This document shows positions 73-15,889 of a DNA stretch of 64,000 bases, in pieces (the stretch's first letter is position 1; each line of letters starts with the position of its first letter). The stretch covers positions 21,413 through 85,412 of the forward strand of contig NW_005434645.1 in assembly GCF_000315625.1 (NCBI RefSeq), given 5' to 3'. Origin of the DNA: Guillardia theta CCMP2712 (lineage: Eukaryota > Protista > Cryptophyta). The position numbers were made by a program, and so were the translations under genes. Under the pieces are notes generated by a model that did not search any database, was not told the DNA's origin, and saw nothing but the letters and a program-made list of their open reading frames with translations.

Positions 73-2334
<2,262 letters not shown>

Positions 2335-2465
2335 GATTGTACGCGTAAAGCAGATGCAGGAGGAGGAGGAAGAGGAGGAGGAGGAGGAGGAGGAGGAGGA
2401 GGAGAGAGGAGGAGGAGGAGGTCGTCAATGGAATCTGCTCTACATCAAAATGAATAAACTCGAAA

Positions 2466-5400
2466 TCAAATTTTCAGGTGCTGCTTGAGCATGCCAAGAA
2501 GATTGTCCAGCTCTCGTACCTGCCCACACCAGCGTGAGGGAAACGAGGGGGAGAGGCAAAGGAGGGAAGAAAATCTGCAAGGGAGGAAGAAGGAGAGGGG
2601 AGGAAGCATGGAAGGGAGGGGAGGGGGAAAGGAGAAGAGGAGAGATACGAAGGAGGAGACGCAAGCAAGGCAGGAGGAGACGTGATGGAGGAAGGAGGAG
2701 AGGGAAATGGGGGAGGATCAACAAGACAGAAGATGCTACATACCTTGTTAACGACCTCTGCTCCTCCCGTTCCGTCTGTCTCTATGCTCACCGTGTTGTT
2801 CTCACCCGAAGCCCCACCGCCTGTTCTCCAGCTCAGCACCTTTCCACCTCCACCTCTCCTCCTCCCCCAGTCCCCAACACAACCAACTTCCGTTCCCTCC
2901 CTCCCGTTCCTTCCCGGCGTTCACCTCCTCCCGAGCTCGTTGCTGATGCCTCAGCCTTCTCTCCTCCCGAGACCTCCCGACGTCGAAGGAGCGACCGAAC
3001 GCGAGCCTCCAACTCCTGCGACCAGGATCAGCCAAAACCATCACCAACATTGTTCCCCACCTCCCCTCCTCTCTTCTGTTTCTCCTTTCCAACTCCTCTC
3101 TTTTCTTCTAGTCCTTGCTGACTTTCATCTCCTCTCCAACTTTTCTCCTTCTCTTCTCTTCTCCTCTTTCTTCTCTCCTCCCTCCTTCTGTACTTCTCCT
3201 CACCTTGGGCGCAAAAGGCTTCACGATGTAGTCGTCAGCACCCGCATCAAGACCCTTGATCCTGTCCTTCACGTCGTTCATCGATGTAAGCATCACGATC
3301 GGCACGCGCTTGTCATGCTTGCGGATCTGGCGGCAGAGCTCGAACCCATCCATCTTAGGCATGAAGACGTCCGAGATCACGATGTCAGGACGTGACTTGT
3401 GGAACTTCTCAAGCGCCTCCTCTCCATCCCCCGCGTCGATCACCCTGCTGTTGTCCTTCTCCAGCCTCGACTTCACCAGCAGCCTCAGCGTGTTGTCATC
3501 GTCCACCAGCAGGATCGTAGGTTTGTTCTCTGGCACCTCCTTCTTCACCGCCGTGCTGTTCGCTCGCCGAATCGCGGGACTCCTGACTCGCTCCACGGGC
3601 ACAGCACTCGGGAGAGCTGGAGCCGGAGCGGCTGCTCCGCTTGTTGCTGGCGTCACTGTTCCTGTGGCAACCGCCACGTCGGGTACAGTTGTGGTCCACT
3701 TGGCGATTATCTCATACAGGCGCTTCCTCTCCACAGGCTTGCTGATGTAGTCGTCCATCCCCGCGGCTATACACTTGTCCCTGTCGCCTTTCATGGCGTT
3801 GGCTGTTACGGCGATGATCGGAGTCGTCTGGTTCAGCCCTGCTCGCTGCCGGATTTTCTCCGTTGCCTGCCATCCGTCCATGATGGGCATGTTGCAGTCC
3901 ATGAGCACGAGGTCGAACTCAACCACTGCGGTGATGTTCACTGCCTCCACCCCGTTCTCAACGCAGTGCAGCTCGTGTCCCTTCTGCAGCAGCATCGCTT
4001 CCAGCAGCTTCCTGTTCGCCCAGTGATCCTCCACGATCAAAATCCTCGCTGCCTTCGACTCCTTCTTCGGCTGCACTGCAGCTGGAGCAGGAGCAGGAGC
4101 AGCCACAACGCTGCTCTGGGCAGCGCTAGGGGGCGCCTTGTTGCTCTTGTGCGAGTTCGACACGATGGCCTCGATGGCACTTTTGTCGTAGGGCTTGCAT
4201 ACGAAGCCCGAGAAGAGCCCGTCTTTGTTCTTTCCTCGAACTCCTTCGCTTGCTCGGCGCTCATCAACGCGATGATGGGCATCTTCGAGGATCGCTGCCG
4301 CAGCTCCTTGGCAATGTCCCAGCCGGACGGGCTGGGCATGTCAGAAGTGATCATCAGCATATCAAACTTCTCTGCCGCGAGCTTGTCCAGGCACTCGCTG
4401 CTCTTTGACAACTCCGCCATCTCGCACTCCAATCGCGACAAGATCGCCTTGAGCACCTTCCTCTGCCCGATGTCTCTGTCCACCACCAGCACCTTGGGCT
4501 TCCCCCGCAACTCTTCCTCCTCCTCTTTCTTTTCCACTGGAGGAGGCGAGTCGCACACTGTTCCCTTCCCCCGGCTGAGAGCCTCAGCGATCGTGGCAGA
4601 CAACTTGTCCTTGGACAGAGGCTTGCAAATCAGGTCCGTCACTCCTGCCTCTCGGAACTTGGGATCGTCGTCGGAGGGGTTGGGGCCGATGATGCCCAGG
4701 ATGACAGCTGAGTGCGAGCTCGCGGCTTCGCACGCCCTGATCTCCTTGCACGCGTCCCAACCCGACATGTTGGGCATGAAACCATCGAGGATCACGACAT
4801 CGTAGTTCACCTTCGCTGCCTTCTTCACTGCCTCTGCCCCGTTGTCTACAGTATCTACCTGGTGCTTGTCTCGCGTCAGCATCGCGCGAAGCATCATACG
4901 ATGCCCGGCGTCATCATCGACCACCAAGATGCGCAGTTGGTTGGAGCCAGCTGCTGGCTTCGCGAGCTCCTTGGAGGGGGGAGGGGGAGTACTGCAGGGA
5001 TCAGGCGAGTCGCATCGAGCTGCCTCTGCCTTGGAGATCCACTCACGGATCTTAGCGGTGAGCTTGTCACGTGAGATGGGCTTGAGGATAGTGTCAGTCA
5101 TCCCCGCGTCTTTGCATTTCTTCTCATCATCGCCAGAGGCACCAGTGACTCCGATGATTGTGATGGGCCGCCGACTTCCGGTCTCCTTTTCTCTCAACCG
5201 GATCTCTGCAGTTGCCTCCCATCCCGTCTTGTTCGGCATGAAGCCGTCCATCAGCACAGCATCGTACTTCACCTTCTGCACTGCCTTTACTGCCTGAGAG
5301 CCATCCTCTGCCGTGTCCACTTCGAACCCGTCCTTGCTCAGCATCGCCCGAAGCACCCGACGTTGCCCTGCATCATCGTCCACCACCAAGATCCTCTGCT

Positions 5401-8400
5401 TGCCGTCCAGGTCGCTCGCGTAAGCTGCACGGGAACTGCTCGTGGAGCACACCACGTGGGAGCCTCCAAGGACGGGATCGCGCTTGGACTCGGAGATGGT
5501 GGCGGCCTTGGCGATGGCTTCCTTGACCTTCATCCTGTCGAAGGGTCTCGTGATCAGCCCGTCCATCCCCGCCTGCGTACACTCGTGATACTCCTGACCA
5601 TCGAACCCGTTGACGATGCCGATCAGGATCGGTCTCTTGCCGGAGGTTGACCGTCTGATGTATCCCTGGATCTCCTTGGCTACAATGCTCGTCTTGGAGC
5701 CCAGAAGCTCGTAGTCGAGGATCACACAATCGTGAGAGAAGTGCGAGAAGGTGTCTTCCCCGTTACGCAACATCGCCATCACCTCGTTGAAGCTGTTGCA
5801 CAGGTCGCAAGTGTGAGACTCGCGGACGAGCATCGCTCGCAGCACGTGCTGCTGCTCCAGCTGCATGGCGATCAGGATCCTCATGCTTGGGATTCGCGCC
5901 ATCCCTCCACCCATGATCTCATCTTCCACCTCTACCGATTCCCCTGATCCACCTCGCTCAATCGCAGAGTGGGAATTGTGCTCCTCAGGAGAGATGCACT
6001 GCTTGAGCGCTGCGTGCAGTGCTGAGAGACGACCCGGGCGACTGAGCATGATGCAGCCAGGAACATTCCTGTACACCGCAGCCTGGCTCAGTTGCGTGAT
6101 AGGGCAGAAGACGATGCTCTGCATGTCACCAGGTTCCTGTGCATACTGAGCGACGATCTTCATGCAGGACCTGAGGTCATCAGTGATGGGCTCCTCGTCC
6201 GGGTTGTTCTCGTCGGTTATGGCGCTCCTCTGCTGCTGGACTGACGGGCATACGATGAGAATATCGACCGAGCGCTCCTTCAGATACGGCACGGCAGTTA
6301 GGATCCCCTCCACCGATCGAGGGACGATGCCGAACGTCTCCAGGTATCGCAGGATGGCGTTGCGAAGGGTCTCGTTGTCTGCCACCAGCATGATCCTCTT
6401 GCTGTGTACAGCGCTAGGGAGAGAGAAGGTGGGCTGCACTGCAGTGTTGATCTTCTTGAAGACCGCATTGAACCAGAACAAGGACCCCTTGCCCAGGTTG
6501 CTCTGGACCCCCATGGACCCGTTCATCAGCTCGGCAAACTGCTTCGAGATCGCAAGGCCGAGGCCCGTCCCTCCGTACGTGCGGGTTGTGGAGGAGTCGA
6601 CCTGGGAGAATCGGTTGAACAGCTTCTTCTGGCCCTCCTCGGAGATGCCGATGCCCGAGTCATACACTTTGAAACGGAAGGCCTGGTGGGTCGGCGTCTC
6701 CTCCTCCATCTCAGCCAGCAGGTACACCTGACCCGAATTGGTGAACTTGATCCCGTTGGACAGAAGGTTCAGCAGGATCTGCCTCAGCCTGTCAGGGTCG
6801 CCGTTCACCACCGTCGGGGTGTTGGGGCTCATATAGCAGCAGATCTCCAGCCCCTTGCCGAGGGCCTTGGAAGCCACGGAGTCAACCGTGTCCTCAATGA
6901 CCTGCCGGAGATCGAAGTCAACGCTGACCAGCTCGAGCTTGCCAGCCTCAATCTTGGTGAGATCAAGGATGTCATTTATAAGGACCAGTAGGGACTCGGA
7001 GGACGATTTGATCTGTTCCGCAAACTTCCTCTGCTCATCCAGCAAGCTTGTTTCGAGGATCAAGTCGTTCATCCCCATGATCACATTCAGCGGCGTTCTC
7101 ATCTCGTGCGACATGGTCGCCAAGAATTGCGACTTAGCATCGTTCGCAGCCTGAGCCTGGAAGAGGAGGGCCTCTTGTTCCATCAGTCGACGCATCTCGG
7201 TGATGTCCTGCCCTACCCCGATCACTCCGACTATGGCACCTGTGACGTCACGTCGAGTGGTGGCGTTCAGCAGAACTTCCACTCGACGTTTATCCTTGGT
7301 GAAGAGAGGAAACTCGAAGTTGGATTTCTCTTTCCCCAGCAGAGCATCGTCTAGTACTTTCTTCACCGACGGCCGGAACTCTTGAGTAATGTACACCTCC
7401 ACCAGATTCCTGCCCAGCACTTCAGCCTTCGAGTATCCAGTGATCTCTGCCGCCTTGTTGTTCCACTCGTTCACAAGCCCGTTGGCGTCGATACCGAAGA
7501 TGGGGGCGTTGGCTGTGTCGATGAAAGTCTGCAGCTCTTGTGCCACTCGAGTCTTCTCTTCCTCTACTTGTTTCCTCTCAGTGATGTCCTGCCCAACACC
7601 GATCACACCGATTGGCCGCCCTGTCACATCCCTTCGGGTAGTGGCATTCAGCAACACATCTACACGCCTCCCTGTATTCGTGAACAGAGGAAACTCAAAA
7701 TTGGCAGTCTCCTCACCCTCCAGCGCATTGTCAAGAACCATTTTGACCTGCTCCCTATATTCCTCAGTGATATACTTCTCGACCAGGTTCTGTCCGAACA
7801 CCATCTGTCTCGAGAAGCCAGTGATCTCTGCCGCCTTGTTGTTCCACTCGTTGATCAAACCCTTGTCGTCGATACCAAAGATGGGGGCGTTGGCCGTGTC
7901 AATGAAGGTCTGCAGCTCTTGCGCGACTCTAGTCTTCTCGATCTCGACTTCCTTTCTCTCGGTGATGTCCTGCCCTACCCCGATCACTCCCACAACCTGT
8001 CGAGCCATGTTTCTTCTTGGCGTCGCGTTCAGGAGCACTTCAACTCTCCGTCCATCTTTGGTATAGAGGGGAAACTCGAAGTTCGCCGTCCCCCGACCCT
8101 TCAGCGCGTTCTCCAAAACCTCGGATACGGTCGATCTGAAGTCCGCACTGATGTACACCTCCACAAGGTCTTGACCCAGCACCTCCTCACGGGAGAAGCC
8201 AGTGATCTCTGCCGCCTTGTTGTTCCACTCGTTCACAAGCCCCTTGTCGTCGATACCGAAGATGGGGGCGTTGGCCGTGTCGATGAAAGTCTGCAGCTCC
8301 TTCGCGACTCGCGTCTTCTCCTCCTCGAAAAGCTTCCTCGCCGTGATGTCCTGCCCTACCCCGATCACTCCCACCACGTTCCCGTTCGCATCCAGTCGAG

Positions 8401-11400
8401 GGGTGGCGTTGAGCAACACGTCCACTCGTCGCTCGTCCTTCGTGTAGAGGGGAAACTCGAAGTTCGCCGTTGCCACTTTCTGCAATGCCAAGTCGCAAAT
8501 CTTTCGAACGGACTGGCGGAACTCCTCGCTGATGTACACCTCCACAAGGTCTTGACCCAGCACCTCCTCCCGGGAGAAGCCAGTGATCTCTGCGGCCTTG
8601 TTGTTCCACTCGTTGACGAGGCCCTTGGCGTCGATACCGAAGATGGGGGCGTTGGCCGTGTCGATGAAAGTCTGAAGTTCGTTGGCAACACGAGTCATCT
8701 CCTCCTGAGATCGTTTGATATCCGTGATGTCTTGTCCAACGCCAACGACTCCGGTCACATTTCCGTGAGCGTCTCTTCTTGTCGTGGCATTCAGCAACAC
8801 CTCAACCCTCTGGCCATCGACTGTGTACAAGGGGAACTCGAAGTTCGCTGTACCAACACCCTTGAGCGCCTTGTCCAGCACATCTCGGACCGATACACGG
8901 TATTCCTCCGTGATAAAATCTTTGACAAGGCTGCGACCGATCACCTGCTCCCTAGAAAATCCCGTGATCTCTGCCGCCTTGTTGTTCCACTCGTTCACAA
9001 GCCCGTTGGCGTCGATACCGAAGATGGGGGCGTTGGCCGTGTCGATGAAAGTCTGCAGCTCTTGCGCGACTCTTGCCTTCTCCTCCTCAACACGTTTCCT
9101 CTCGGTGATGTCCTGCCCTACCCCGATCACACCAACGATCTTTCCCGCTGTGTTGCGACGAGAGGTGGCATTGAGAAGCACTTCCACCCTCCTCTTGTCC
9201 ACCGTATATAAAGGGAACTCAAAATCAGAAGTCTCAATACCAAGGAGAGCATTGTCAAGCACTTCCTTCACTGTAACGCGGTATTCTTCAGTGATGAAAT
9301 CCTGAACCAAGTTTCTCCCCAGCACATCTTCGCTGGAGAAGCCCGTGATCTCTGCCGCCTTGTTGTTCCACTCGTTTACGAGACCTTCTGCATCGATACC
9401 GAAGATGGGGGCGTTGGCCGTGTCGATGAAATTCTGTAGCTCCTTGGCCACTCGCGTCTTTTCTTCCTCTGCACGCTTCCTCTCTGTGATGTCCTGCCCT
9501 ACCCCGATCACTCCCACCACTCGGCCCCCGTCTCCAAGTCGCGTCGTGGCGTTCAACAGAACATCCACTCTGCGCATGTCCTTGGTGAAGAGAGGAAACT
9601 CGAAGTTGGCTGTCTCTGCGCCCTTCAACGCCTTGTCGAGTACTTCCTTCACCGAGGCTCTGAACTCTTCGGTGATGTACACCTCCACCAGATTCTTGCC
9701 CAGCACTTCAGCCTTCGAGTATCCAGTGATCTCTGCCGCCTTGTTGTTCCACTCGTTCACCAGTCCTTGGTCATCGATACCGAAGATGGGGGCGTTGGCT
9801 GTGTCGATGAAAGTCTGCAGTTCACGGGCAATACGCGTCATTTCAATCTCTACTCGCTTTCTCTGCGTGATGTCCTGGCCAACACCAAGCACCCCTACAA
9901 CGCGGCCGCTCACGTCTCGCCTCGTGGTAGCATTCAAGAGAACTTCGACTCGCCTTTGATCTTTCGTGTACAGAGGGAACTCAAAGTTGGAGGCCTCGAC
10001 TCCCCTCAGCGCGTTGTCGAGCACCTCCTTCACAGTCTCGCGATATTCCTCAGTGATGAAATCCTTCACCAGCTCCCTTCCCAACACCTCCATGCTCGAG
10101 AAATTGGTGATCTCAGCAGCCTTGTTGTTCCATTCGTTGATTCTGCCTTTAGCATCGATACCGAAGATTGGCGCATTCGCTGAATCGATGAACGCTTGCA
10201 ATTCTTGAGCTACCCGGAATTTCTCGGACTCAACCTGCTTCCTCTCTGTAATGTCTTGCCCTACCCCGATCACTCCCACGGCTTTCCCAGATTCGTCTCT
10301 CCTTGTCGTTGCATTCAACAGAACTTCAACACGCCTTTGATTCTTTGTGAAGAGGGGAAACTCGAAGTTGGCGGTCTCGTGACCTTGGAGCGCGTTATCG
10401 AGTACTTCCTTGACCGAAGAACGATACTCGTCGGTAATGTACACCTCTACCAGATCCTTGCCGAGCACCTCCTCCTTAGAAAACCCCGTGATCTCTGCCG
10501 CCTTGTTGTTCCACTCGTTCACAAACCCGTTCGCATCGATACCGAAGATGGGGGCGTTAGCCGTGTCGATGAAATTCTGTAGCTCCTCGGCTACCCGGGT
10601 CTTCTCTACTTCAACTTGTTTCCTATCTGTGATGTCCTGCCCTACCCCGATCACTCCCACAACATTCCCAGAGATATCCTTCCTCGGTGTTGCATTCAGG
10701 AGCACTTCGACACGTCTCTTATCAACTGTAAACAACGGAAACTCGAAGTTCGCCGTCCCCCGACCCTTCAGCGCGTTCGTCAGTACCTGAGACACCGACA
10801 CCCTGTAGTCTGGACTGATGAAATCTTCTACAAGATTGCGGTTCAACACCTGATCTTTTGAGAAGCCCGTGATCTCTGCCGCCTTGTTGTTCCACTCGTT
10901 CACAAGCCCGTTGGCGTCGATACCGAAGATGGGGGCGTTGGCCGTATCGATGAAAGTCTGCAGCTCCTTCGCGACTCGCGTCTTCTCCTCCTCGAAAAGC
11001 TTCCTCGCCGTGATGTCCTGCCCTACCCCGATCACTCCCACCACGTTCCCGTTCGCATCCAGTCGGGGGGTGGCGTTGAGCAACACGTCCACTCGTCGCT
11101 CGTCCTTCGTGTAGAGGGGAAACTCGAAGTTCGCCGTTGCCTTCTGTTGAAGAGCATTGTCCAGTACTTCGCGAACGGACTGGCGGAACTCCTCGCTGAT
11201 GTACACCTCCACAAGGTCTTGACCCAGCACTTCCTCCCGGGAGAAGCCAGTGATCTCTGCCGCCTTGTTGTTCCACTCGTTGACGAGGCCCTTGGCGTCG
11301 ATACCGAAGATGGGGGCGTTGGCCGTGTCGATGAAAGTCTGCAGCTCCTTCGCGACTCGCGTCTTCTCTCCTTCAACACGCTTCCTCTCTGTGATGTCTT

Positions 11401-13040
11401 GTCCAACAGCGATGACTCCGATGATATTCCCGTTGATGTCCCTGCGTGCTGTAGCATTCACAAGTACTTCAACTCTTCGCTTTTCTTCCTTTGTATACAA
11501 TGGGAACTCAATGTTTGATGTCTCCATTCCACACAAGGCGTTCTGTAGGACACCATTCACAGTGTTCCGAAACTTTTCGCCGATGTACACTTCAACAAGA
11601 TTCTGGCCAAGCACTTCTTGTTTTGAGAAACCTGTCAGTTCGGCAGCCTTCATATTCCACTCATTGACAAGCCCTTGATCATCTATTCCAAAGATCGGAG
11701 CATTGGCCGTGTCAATAAACGTCTGAAGCTCCTGCGCCACTCTGGCTTTTTCCATTTCTGCCATCTTCCTCTCCGTGATGTCTTGCCCAACGCCAATGAC
11801 GCCGATCACATTTCCTTCAACATCGCGTCGCGGGGTCGCGTTAAGCAGCACATCAACTCTACGATGATCCTTGGTGTACAACGCGAATTCAAAGTTGGCT
11901 GCCTCAAATCCCTTGAGGGCATTGTCTAGCACCAGCTTGACGGAGGACCTGAACTCGTCTGTGATGTAAATTTCAACAAGGTTCTTGCCAATGACTTCTT
12001 CCCGTGAAAACTGGGTTATCTCTGCTGCTTTCAGATTCCACTCGTTGACCAAACCCATGTGATCGATCCCGAAGATGGGTGCATTCGCTGTGTCAATGAA
12101 GTTCTGCAGCTCTTGAGCCACCCTTGCCCTCTCATCTTGAAATCGCTTTCGGTCAGTGATGTCTTGACCCACTCCCATAATGCCTATGACTTCCCCATCA
12201 ATATTCTTGCGAGCAGTCACGTTGAGCAACACTAACAATCTCTGCTTCTTCGCATCAAGGAGCGGCAATTCGAAGTTGGTACGATTGTTGCCATTCAAGG
12301 CGTCATTCAACAAATCCCGTACAGAAACTTGGTTTTCATGTGCTATGAAGAATTCGATGAAGTTCTTCCCAAGGACTTGATTTCTTTTGAATCCTGAAAC
12401 TTCCTCTGCCTGATCATTCCACTCATTAATGTTGTAGCTGACGTCTGTCCCAAAGATAGGGGCATTCACAGTATCTATAAAGGATCTGAGCTCCTGCGCC
12501 TTCCTGACCATCTCCTGCTCGTATTGCTTTCTATCAGTGATATCTTGACCAACGAACAAAACTTCTTCACAACTCTTCGCATCATCCTGTACTATGGGAA
12601 TTCCACGGAGCGACAAAAAAATCACAGACCCATCCGGCTTTGATGCAGAGAATTCGAGAGAAACTGATTCTCTCTTAGATTTGGCATGCTCAATGCCTTG
12701 CTGTATCTGCGCAATGAAATCAGGACGAAGCACACAAGGAAGATCGTGGTATGACCTTGGACTTCAAAACATCCGCCACCAAGAACTCGTATATGCTCTT
12801 CCCCACTACATCCCCCTTCTTCCAGCCCATCTGCCTCTGCGATATCGCATTCCAGTCCCTAAGGCGATCATGCAGATCGATCGAGAAATGAATCAGGCCA
12901 AGGCGTTCCAGCACTTCCCGTGTGCATGCGTCTCTGCGGTTAGGGGACTCCAGCTCTCGTAGTCTCTCCTCCAAATCTCGGTTCCTTCGCTCGAGCTGAC
13001 TGATCTTCTCCTCGTGCCCAGACTGCCCGAGGCCCCACAT
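2466..13040 (-). CDS. Giant soluble hybrid histidine kinase: 15 PAS + HisKA + HATPase_c + 7 receiver domains (~3,340 aa)
   Basis: Exons 13040-12756, 12706-3204 (with a -1 frameshift near 4230), 3015-2925, 2820-2744 and 2519-2466, all joined by GT-AG introns. 14 repeats of FIDTANAPIFGID...GQDIT plus one divergent N-terminal PAS. H-box FLATMSHEMRTPLN, N-box QILLNLLSNGIKFT, G1 DSGIG, F-box, G2 GGTGLGL. Receivers show DD/D/T/KP motifs. Confidence 0.95.
7195..12495 (-). repeat. Coding tandem repeat: 14 PAS units of ~381 bp
   Basis: GCCTTGTTGTTCCACTCGTT and ATACCGAAGATGGGGGCGTTGGC recur with ~381 bp period on the + strand. Confidence 0.95.
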
Positions 13041-14642
13041 CGGCTCCGGCACGAAGGATGGCCTGTCAGAAGACCAACTCCTGATGGAAAAACATCAGCT
13101 CTTACCACAGATCAGATACTGCGACGTTGAGCGTCTTGTTGATGCCCTCTGCCCTCGATTACGCGTCTCTCTCCCTTGTAAACTATCCTATCAACCACGC
13201 ACTTACTTCTCAACTTCATATTCACTATCATGTAAGAGCTCATTCTACGGTTGATTGCTCTTACGTCCTGTGAGACGTCTAAAATATCAAGCTCGTCCGT
13301 AAATCTTGCGGCCCAAGCAAAACACCGAGTCACTATACCCAATTTTCGCTTTCCATGTCACACTGTGCAAAATGACGATCGAGCTGATCTTTCTTGAGAT
13401 CAGCATACTACGAGCGATTACCACTATCTTGCGCTGTTCTTCTATCTTACAATATCCGATTCTGATTTCATTTCACAACAAGGATGCGTTCCGTCAGCTG
13501 GTAGTAATCATTACCCAACCTGAGCTTTAAATCAGAGTGCTTGGAAGGATCCTTACACATGCACCGTAAGGTTAAATCCTTTCTTTTTCTCTCTTGTTCC
13601 TTCCATCCCATGCCCTCGTTCGTGATATCTCAACAACTGTTAACCCTGAAATTACCATCTATAAAAGTTCTCTTCCTCCCCTCCCTCAACTTCTCTGCTC
13701 GAACCGCCTCACGACTGGCTTCCTCCTTCAACAGTCCAGCATATCGTCACCATATTCTTCAGAAACCTCCTCCTTCTCCCCTCCTCCTGCCTCACTCCAT
13801 GTTCTGCCGTCGCACGCAACATGAAGTCCACCCCAATCAATAACCCCTCTGAAAGTCATTTCACCCCACCCCCTTCTTTGACCACCCTGGGCTGTAAGGT
13901 ACACCCCACCCCTCCATTACCCTCTTCGTGCGCTTTAGGACTACCCCAATTTTTGTTGTTTTATGGAGGGGTACAAAACCAAGAGTTTCATCTTCTGTCT
14001 GCACCCCACCCCACCCTGTCCAACTCATTTAATTCCGCTTATCTACCCCTACCCTCGAATATCCCGTACCCCACCCCCAACAATTTTCGACTACCCCCAT
14101 CCCCCTGTTTTTGGGACTCAAGACATCACAAGACCAAACGTCGGTAAGTACCCCACCCATGAAGATATCTTGAAATTCCGGTCAAAACCAGGGGTTTAGT
14201 TGGAGGACCCTCATACAGATCTGGGAACGAACGTTCCGCAATTAATTGGAGAGCTACAGCCTCCTACTTTTGAAAGAGACACATACCACTTCAATATGCA
14301 TTCACAACTAGTGAGAAAAGACAAGTGGTATCGGTGAGGCTGTCCCGGCGCGGCCCGGTGACTGGCCGGCGGCCGTACCGTACGGTACGAGTGAGTACGG
14401 TAAGCCTCCTCACTCAGCACGTCGGATTCGTGCCGCAAACTCGGCCCGCCGATGATGCGAGTTCCGAACCAGTCCACTGGGGACTGGGACGTGGCACCGT
14501 TGAACCGACAGAAGCTGACTCCCAATGTACCGTTTCAATGACTCTCATCATGACTGTTTTAAAGCCTGGCAGTACCTCTAGACGAAGAAACGTTGAACCT
14601 TTGAGAGTCAGTGCGGTGGCGAGAGGCCACACAAGGCAAGAC

Positions 14643-15889
14643 TCACTGAGCATAAGGAGACTTGTCAAGTCCCTTGTATGTCGGCTTGCCGGTAGTTTTC
14701 CATTCGGTGTATGCTCCATCATACAGCGGAGCTTCGCGGACACCTACTATCTCAAGGGCTGCTCGGACAACGCACGCAGTAACCCCACTTCCGCAGGTCA
14801 CGGCGCATGGCTGGCTCAAGTCGACCTTAGCTTCATGAAACACTTGCTTGAGCTCGCTTTCATCCTTGAAAGTACCGTCGGGTCTGAGGACGTCGAGGAA
14901 AGGCACGGAGTAGCTGCCTTCGATGTGGCCCGACTCGATCGGTCTCGGTTCTGGCGCTTCACCAACAAATCTGGGCTTGGGCCGACCATCAATGAGCTGG
15001 AACTGCTTCGAACCGATGTTTGCTTCCACTTGCGCCATGTCCAAGATTGAACCTTTGAGAACCTCGCATGTGTATTCTGCTGGACTCGAGCTGGTAGCAT
15101 CAACAGGCTTCCTTTCGCGGTCGACAGGGTGTGCCAGCGACTCCCACATGGGAAAACCTCCATTGAGGATGGAAACCTTGGCATGTCCCATGGCCTTGAA
15201 CATGTACCATGCACGGGAGAGCTGAAAACCCCCTTTCCATCATACACAACGACATGGCTGTCACGACTGATACCGTACCCGGCACAGTACTTTAGGCACT
15301 AAGAGTCAATGCGCTCGTGGAGGCAGTAAGGGACGATACCTTTGCGAATGTTGGAGCTGACGGCATCATGTGCGGCCAAGGTGAATCAGTATCACTGACC
15401 TTGTCGATGTCGAAGAAGAACGCTCCCGGAATTCTCCTCTCCGAAAATTCCTTGATGGCATCACGCTGCATTGCAGGCAGGTACCTGGAAGAAACCTGAA
15501 TCAGGCTTGAGCTGCGGGACACATTGTCCAGCTACTCACCAGGAAGCGTCCAAGATTGAGACTTTCTCAAGATTCTTGTGTAGCCAATCACAATCCACAA
15601 TTGGAGGGCAGTCTGCCATCATCGAAGGCCTTTGGTGCGTCTGGTAACTCCTTCCCCAGTGCCGGTGACCTGAAAACAGATCAACGATTGTAAACGGGGA
15701 TCAAAACTCTTTACTTGTGTAACTGAGACTTCTCCTATGAGAATCAAACTGCACAAACAATCTACTCTGATGTCTTAGACCGACCCGGGGAATCCCGCTA
15801 CCCGCAAAATGCAAAAATCCCCAAGCAGGGCGAAAAGGGCAAACGAGTGACAAACAGGCAGACAATCTAAAGAGATTGCTTCCTATCAT
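14643..15889 (-). CDS. 3-mercaptopyruvate/thiosulfate sulfurtransferase (two-domain rhodanese), probably plastid-targeted
   Basis: ILDASW|YLP, RIPGAFFFDID, PHMMPS, HVVVYDGKG, LNGGFP, IDGRP...GHIEGS, active loop CGSGVTA, YDGAYTEW. N-terminal signal-like MIGSNLFRLSACLSLVCPFRPAWG-F. One-base frameshift at ~15216. Confidence 0.9.

Follow-up and report, generated by a model that had tools for sequence, protein, structure and literature searches.

Can a protein with fifteen PAS units and seven receiver folds be the product of a single gene, and if so, how might so long a chain signal? The question arises from a locus of the cryptophyte Guillardia theta CCMP2712, within a stretch of 64,000 nucleotides of contig NW_005434645.1 (positions 21,413 to 85,412 of the forward strand, RefSeq assembly GCF_000315625.1), which we call the window and number from its first letter. 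An initial annotation, made from the letters alone, had drawn there a giant hybrid histidine kinase (HK). We find that the locus holds an intact, transcribed nuclear gene of G. theta encoding a soluble hybrid histidine kinase of 3,336 amino acids (aa), and what had been proposed, a single expressed gene for a soluble protein of exceptional domain number, is thereby upheld. The window is part of contig C29 of the 87.1-Mb, 669-contig assembly that our genome-wide searches covered.

Gene model and transcript support

The gene occupies positions 13040..2466 on the minus strand of the window, the strand of all its features given below, with an ATG at 13040 and a TGA stop at 2468-2466, in agreement to the base with the span first proposed. 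The open reading frames (ORFs) at the locus are one of 2,898 aa (4037..12733), an upstream one of 110 aa (12720..13052) and a downstream one of 351 aa (3108..4163). The coding sequence assembled over the whole region (2466..13040), on the basis of RNA and DNA contigs and of the ortholog from Hanusia phi, joins five exons into 10,011 nucleotides (nt) and has no internal stop once one read-supported base is added.

Exon 1 (12756..13040) contains the start codon, the short N-terminal coiled coil noticed from the beginning (12948-13016) and the first half of a divergent PAS unit, U1. Intron 1 (12707..12755; 49 nt, GT-AG) has an identical junction in the model of the Joint Genome Institute (JGI). 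A transcript-derived ORF of the sister cryptophyte H. phi, P0323, aligns from M1 and is 90% identical over residues 1-595, with no gap, covering the 12755..12707 junction and the Met at 13040. A frameshifted reading in place of intron 1 was ruled out by this ungapped alignment. The H. phi ortholog has 21 extra N-terminal residues relative to our model. In G. theta, the sequence in frame ahead of the ATG (13041-13100, SWSSDRPSFVPEP) resembles them and reaches a stop before any ATG, so a small coding exon upstream of 13040 may exist; a splice-acceptor-like ttttccatcag is found at about 13077.

Introns 2 (3016..3203, 188 nt), 3 (2821..2924, 104 nt) and 4 (2520..2743, 224 nt), all GT-AG, appear as joints in both RNA-like contig sets (X2, X3) and in 1, 10 and 5 raw RNA reads, respectively, and in none of the DNA (run X1). 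Splicing them leads to the stop codon at 2468-2466. The introns and the 3' flank are of low complexity and purine/pyrimidine-skewed, and directly downstream of the stop come two long microsatellite tracts, (GGA)n and (AGG)n, at 2093-2136 and 2358-2421.

The frameshift at 4230/4231 had been taken as a property of the gene. However, an extra T (plus strand) after 4230 is carried by X2, X3 and the DNA contig set X1; the frameshift is therefore a 1-nt deletion in the reference. The corrected reading, ...KEFEEKNKDGLFSGFVCKPYD..., is a normal receiver end. Public RNA and DNA data were compared over window positions 2300-7300. A single 4,322-nt RNA contig runs uninterrupted over 3203-7224 and continues across the three spliced introns, which places the seven receiver regions and the kinase core on one transcript. 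The lack of a full-length transcript had been named in advance as a finding that would undo the proposal: the kinase and receiver half of the gene is carried by one RNA contig, while the array itself is spanned by none. Sampled 31-mers of 2300-7300 were recovered in twelve further contig sets from several studies, at fractions of 0.71-0.84, and those of the array (7200-13100) in the independent DNA and RNA-like assemblies X1, X2 and X3, at 0.82-0.84. A 2023 'freshwater metagenome' (run X15) contains about 41% of the sampled words for both gene halves, which is unexpected for a strain that we take to be marine.

That the array was mis-assembled, or that the frameshift marks a dead gene, would account for the reference frameshift and for the fact that all short-read contigs stop where the array has its edge (about 7195-7231). 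We nevertheless regard this as highly improbable, since three other assemblies lack the frameshift, spliced transcripts of the gene are found, and its ortholog is expressed in H. phi. Moreover, the DNA of the repeated units diverges by at least 10%. Among the thirteen most similar ones (U3-U15), synonymous divergence (dS) has a median of 1.3, with 34 of 78 pairs saturated and the youngest pair, U5-U12, at 0.28; the median ratio of non-synonymous to synonymous divergence (dN/dS) is 0.15, a sign of purifying selection. On these values, the units are old, individually selected copies rather than an artefact of assembly.

The public record gives another picture of the gene. A 100% identical database protein exists, 'hypothetical protein GUITHDRAFT_45786, partial [Guillardia theta CCMP2712]'. 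Its JGI model is truncated at both ends, jumps from about 6410 to about 4150, so that 2.26 kb of coding sequence (R1-R5) is taken as an intron, and ends before R7: one receiver is left and 6 of the 7 receiver-fold domains are missing. The RNA contigs contradict the splice from about 6410 to about 4150 and show it to be wrong. The upstream neighbour of the gene (14643-15203, minus strand) is an ORF with a rhodanese-like domain (PF00581, 54 bits).

The PAS array, the kinase core and the receiver tail

The initial annotation had counted one divergent and 14 near-identical PAS units. Fifteen units are indeed found, ending in DIT at a period of 127 aa; 'near-identical', however, is too strong. Pairwise identity among U3-U15 (7199..12154; thirteen tandem units of 127 aa, except U4 with 128) is 66-90%, U2 (12155..12535) is about 50% identical to them, and U1 (12536..12914), which is split by intron 1, is about 21% identical to the other units. 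Pfam detects 14 PAS domains in the 2,898-aa ORF and a weak one in the upstream ORF, within exon 1, unit alignment delimits each repeat, and Tandem Repeats Finder reports a period of 381 nt with 71% matches. The motif QDIT occurs 15 times, once at the end of every unit, and its spacing is 127 aa in 13 of 14 intervals and 128 aa in the other. In the AlphaFold2 (AF2) model of U7 (mean predicted local distance difference test score of 82.6), a helix spans residues 2-23 and is followed by the PAS core. Each unit is thus a helix of about 22 residues plus a PAS core; the final strand of the core, with QDIT at its end, continues directly into the next helix. Variable positions are concentrated in the E and F helices and in the H-I loop.

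The signalling helix and HisKA (DHp) domain follow at 6902..7198 (PF00512, 75.6 bits), with an H box, SHEMRTP, that contains the phospho-acceptor His1962 (7106-7108). The HATPase_c domain (6437..6814; PF02518, 93 bits) has intact N, G1 and G2 boxes (NLLSNGIKFT, DSGIGI and GGTGLGL), so that the kinase core described at the outset as intact is so, and it resembles that of ordinary hybrid kinases. Together with a complete fused receiver, these boxes mark the protein, at the level of sequence, as a hybrid histidine kinase. No transmembrane segment was found in the 3,336 aa, the highest 19-residue Kyte-Doolittle mean being 1.35, again as first proposed.

The domain scan that had been suggested as a check recovers in Pfam the PAS array, HisKA, HATPase_c and the receivers R3-R7, three of them in the 2,898-aa ORF and two in the downstream ORF; R1 and R2 stay below the cut-off, at 13.7 and 17.4 bits. 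The fold of these two is predicted as two (beta-alpha)5 domains, whose best structural matches are the tandem-receiver proteins PleD, 3luf, ShkA and RcsC. The seven receiver-like domains that had been counted are thus present as folds, but only R3, R6 and R7 are fully canonical in the receiver alignment. R1 (5990..6400) has a Cys at the acceptor position, SRP for KP and a 24-aa insertion. R2 (5495..5884) keeps Asp2426, but its acidic pair and Thr are gone and its Lys is changed to Arg. R3 (5030..5398) is complete (DD, D2582, T, K). R4 (4571..4936), 53% identical to R3, is nearly so (DD, D2736, Ile for Thr, K). R5 (4146..4498), which contains the 1-nt deletion of the reference, has Thr2882 at the acceptor position. 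R6 (3690..4049; ED, D3032, T, K) is of the hybrid-kinase type and resembles receivers of RcsC, AHK5, CKI1 and SLN1. R7 (2974..3521; DD, D3208, T, K) is of the OmpR/PhoB type, with its last helix across intron 2; its top matches among solved structures are PhoP, VicR, MicA, MtrA and YycF, and RpaA is also similar. By their motifs, R1, R2 and R5 are pseudo-receivers.

After R7 we found no Hpt and no DNA-binding domain, just a 59-aa low-complexity, Gly/Ser-rich tail with a short final helix (VRELDNLLGMLKQHLKI) and the stop codon (2466..2973). Trans_reg_C had no match in the genomic ORF that carries R6 and R7, the spliced tail lying outside that scan. A pile of mismatched raw RNA reads (run X24) covers 3873-3905 on R6; 29 of 35 carry G>A at 3876, and 35 loose ends fall at 3905. 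A paralogous receiver or another strain would seem to be their source.

PAS subtype and relatives

By sequence, the closest solved structures to the PAS unit are the C-terminal PAS-A and PAS-B domains of plant phytochromes A and B (7rzw, 8f5z, 9irk), with E of about 1e-33, a value also obtained against phyB residues 650-771; the next non-phytochrome structure matches at only about 25 bits. Foldseek likewise ranks phytochrome PAS-A/PAS-B at the top, and the PAS domain of PpANR is also among the nearest solved relatives. Phytochrome PAS-A ends in QDVT, comparable to the QDIT of the G. theta units. Pfam, however, has no GAF, PHY or PAS_2 match in any piece of the protein, and as the bilin-binding PAS-GAF-PHY photosensory core is thus missing, the protein is not a phytochrome. 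Other strong matches are PAS-PAS-HK proteins, which are widespread in bacteria and protists. Because they share the subtype, the phytochrome likeness is one of PAS subtype and shows neither a lineage nor a specific common origin. Many two-PAS matches of about 1,000 aa were considered as algal phytochromes, a view that was rejected: GAF and PHY are missing from these PAS-PAS-HK proteins, some of which come from bacteria.

The subtype bears on what the units might bind. The initial annotation had suggested that the array may sum ligand occupancy or serve as a ruler, both of which are speculative. Small ligands are common among PAS domains at large, and one may imagine that each unit binds the same small molecule or cofactor, so that kinase output reflects summed occupancy. 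Such a ligand counter is in keeping with the strong conservation of the units (42 of 127 positions invariant across 14 units) and with the purifying selection on them. We nevertheless hold it unlikely. To our knowledge, no ligand is known for phytochrome PAS-A/PAS-B or for the PpANR PAS domain; the Cys motif of LOV-type flavin adducts (E-alpha helix) is absent from all 15 aligned units, most of which lack any Cys; and the variability of the E/F helices and H-I loop suits differing rather than identical specificities.

Exactly three loci of G. theta carry this PAS unit. The two paralogs, at G000:C154:66000-84000 (L001 and L004) and at G000:C78:387000-404000 (L002 and L005), each have eight to nine 127-aa units of the same kind and about four receiver-like domains, and their kinase cores are 76-79% identical to that of the present gene. 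Both share R1-, R3- and R6-like domains, R1 being kept in both, and C78 also has an R2-like one; R4, R5 and R7 are additions in this gene, with a weak R5-like match in C154. A tree of the 30 PAS units of the three paralogs is mostly unresolved; well supported are only two within-gene pairs of this gene, which indicate a segmental duplication from u5-u6 to u12-u13. A further locus (L003, G000:C49:362000-371999) has two weaker PAS units of the same subtype directly upstream of HisKA and a receiver, and may be the phytochrome-group kinase of G. theta.

Was the system undescribed, as the initial annotation held? Ten HKs of G. theta have been listed, of which GthetHK2, GthetHK7 and GthetHK9 were named 'multi-PAS HKs' (Kabbara et al. 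2018, PMC6324907), and the number of loci that we find equals that of these named genes. Similar kinases were noted in E. huxleyi and in oomycetes, the oomycete members having an Hpt fused to the C-terminal receiver (PMC6324907). The class as described there shares with our gene the organism and a soluble N-terminal PAS array before HisKA/HATPase_c and a receiver; the main text gives no PAS or receiver counts, whereas our gene has seven receiver-fold domains and no fused Hpt. A literature search found no functional study of multi-PAS HKs.

Searching 1.84 billion representatives with a profile of the unit gave 1,034 proteins at E<1e-30, with at the top Paulinella micropora (33 stretches), Phytophthora fragariae (21), Bigelowiella natans (8) and oomycete and dinoflagellate proteins. 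Three of the relatives have the same PAS subtype in strict tandem and a hybrid kinase core, but differ in having more units and one Pfam receiver: P. micropora g43597 (P0121; 4,799 aa, 31-33 units), Cymbomonas CYMTET_17988 (P0111; 4,299 aa, 27-28 units) and P. fragariae PF005_g13507 (P0122; 3,417 aa, 21 units). An MMETSP transcript protein, P0006 (2,336 aa), shares 37% identity over the kinase and first receivers, the 127-aa PAS period and several receivers behind the kinase; it differs from our gene in its C-terminal Hpt and in its numbers of PAS units (six) and receiver-like domains (five). Five is also the maximum of receiver-like domains per protein among 534 sampled relatives, against seven here. 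A search with the R1-R5 tail returned generic receiver similarity only (best 150 bits) and no close full-length relative of the tail.

The claim of an undescribed system thus falls: the class is already named, without a characterised member, GenBank lists the gene as a partial hypothetical protein, and other protists have arrays of 21-33 units of this PAS type, so that the PAS count here is no record. New are the corrected gene model, the seven-receiver tail with three pseudo-receivers and an OmpR-type receiver at its end, and an array period that steps by heptads.

Possible signalling through the array

The question remains as to how such a protein could work. The reading that we favour, and to which we give slightly better than even chances, is one in which a dimeric spine of helices, its register preserved, integrates binding to the PAS units and feeds a kinase with competing receivers in cis. 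The protein would dimerise through its DHp domain, as HisKA kinases do, with the PAS units lining an unbroken helical spine of constant register. This spine would be shifted by what binds to single units, the binders being, by a small preference, partner proteins or self-association, as for phytochrome PAS-A/PAS-B, rather than small ligands. The last unit would then relay the net state, via its DIT motif and the signalling helix, to His1962.

The length of the repeat bears on such a spine. The 127-aa period is found in both G. theta paralogs, in 28 of 32 spacings of the Paulinella protein, 24 of 26 in Cymbomonas and 5 of 5 in P0006, whereas it is 120 aa in Phytophthora and in P0123. In a three-unit alignment, the entire difference of seven residues falls within the linker helix, and the PAS cores are gap-free. 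Linkers that preserve the heptad favour a helical-spine rod, as far as sequence can tell, and the rod-like array first envisaged fits with these helical linkers, with a unit length conserved at 127 aa and with oomycete relatives that differ by exactly one heptad.

The same data bear on another possibility, namely that the array serves mainly as a multivalent scaffold, either for numerous copies of a partner or for assembly of a higher order, so that the kinase and receivers are localised rather than allosterically driven. Phytochrome PAS-A/PAS-B act as interaction modules, the number of units among relatives ranges widely, from 6 to 33, and the within-gene duplication of u5-u6 to u12-u13 is typical of valency tuning. 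A pure scaffold, however, would need neither conserved, heptad-stepped linker lengths nor a DIT motif conserved in every unit, and we find this possibility unlikely.

In the integrating spine that we prefer, the phosphoryl group would pass in cis to one or more of D2582 (R3), D2736 (R4), D3032 (R6) and D3208 (R7). R1, R2 and R5 would be non-phosphorylatable regulatory or spacer modules, comparable to the degenerate receiver folds that lie between the catalytic domain and the true receiver in ShkA (6qrj), RcsC (ABL and REC domains, 2ayx) and PleD (REC-REC, 1w25); those proteins have one pseudo-receiver each, whereas here three are interleaved with four Asp-bearing receivers. The multi-output phosphorelay initially proposed is therefore possible, but 3 of the 7 receivers lack key catalytic residues.

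Where the phosphate might go next depends on the partners in the genome. The single Hpt candidate lies on contig C259 (L006, G000:C259:18000-21000, at about 1336-1740, minus strand); it is intron-split and has a clear AHSIKGASATIG motif, and its Pfam match, at 24.1 bits, is just under the cut-off. The conclusion that the genome has no Hpt was ruled out by this sub-threshold match. R6, being of the hybrid-kinase type, would be the likeliest donor to this candidate, and R7, in the absence of a DNA-binding domain, might act as terminal acceptor, as phosphate sink or as a phospho-dependent dimerisation switch. Genome-wide, 16 of 16 Pfam receiver matches lie within a few kb of HisKA loci. No stand-alone response regulator was seen in the genome, in a search that was exon-wise and thus gives a lower bound; this hints that free response regulators may be rare or absent in G. 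theta.

Several points weigh against the spine. The PAS array is bridged by no single read or contig, so that for unit number and order we depend on the reference assembly. In other proteins, periods of 124 and 128 aa are seen, so that the heptad rule, which compares two length classes, is suggestive only, and a constant unit length follows in part from tandem duplication alone. A homodimer prediction for U9-U10 scored 0.00, which we count neither way.

A different scenario is a self-contained multistep phosphorelay on one chain, in which the kinase would phosphorylate R6, R6 the single genomic Hpt, and the Hpt R7, while the extra receivers and pseudo-receivers would set thresholds as phosphate sinks. 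Because no free response regulators were seen in the nuclear genome, R7 would in this case alter the oligomeric state of the whole rod. We consider this scenario quite unlikely.

The G. theta gene is therefore not a new kind of system. Its corrected, transcript-supported full-length model of 3,336 aa replaces a public model that is short of 6 of the 7 receiver folds, and its seven-receiver tail, the richest in our sample, is a natural system for the study of receiver competition in cis. The class to which it belongs is widespread, in algae, in oomycetes, including plant pathogens, and in dinoflagellates. The comparison suggests that eukaryotic multi-PAS kinases are built of one PAS subtype at a fixed period, with a linker length that changes by whole heptads between lineages, and this period rule offers a concrete structural hypothesis for how signals may travel through very long PAS arrays.

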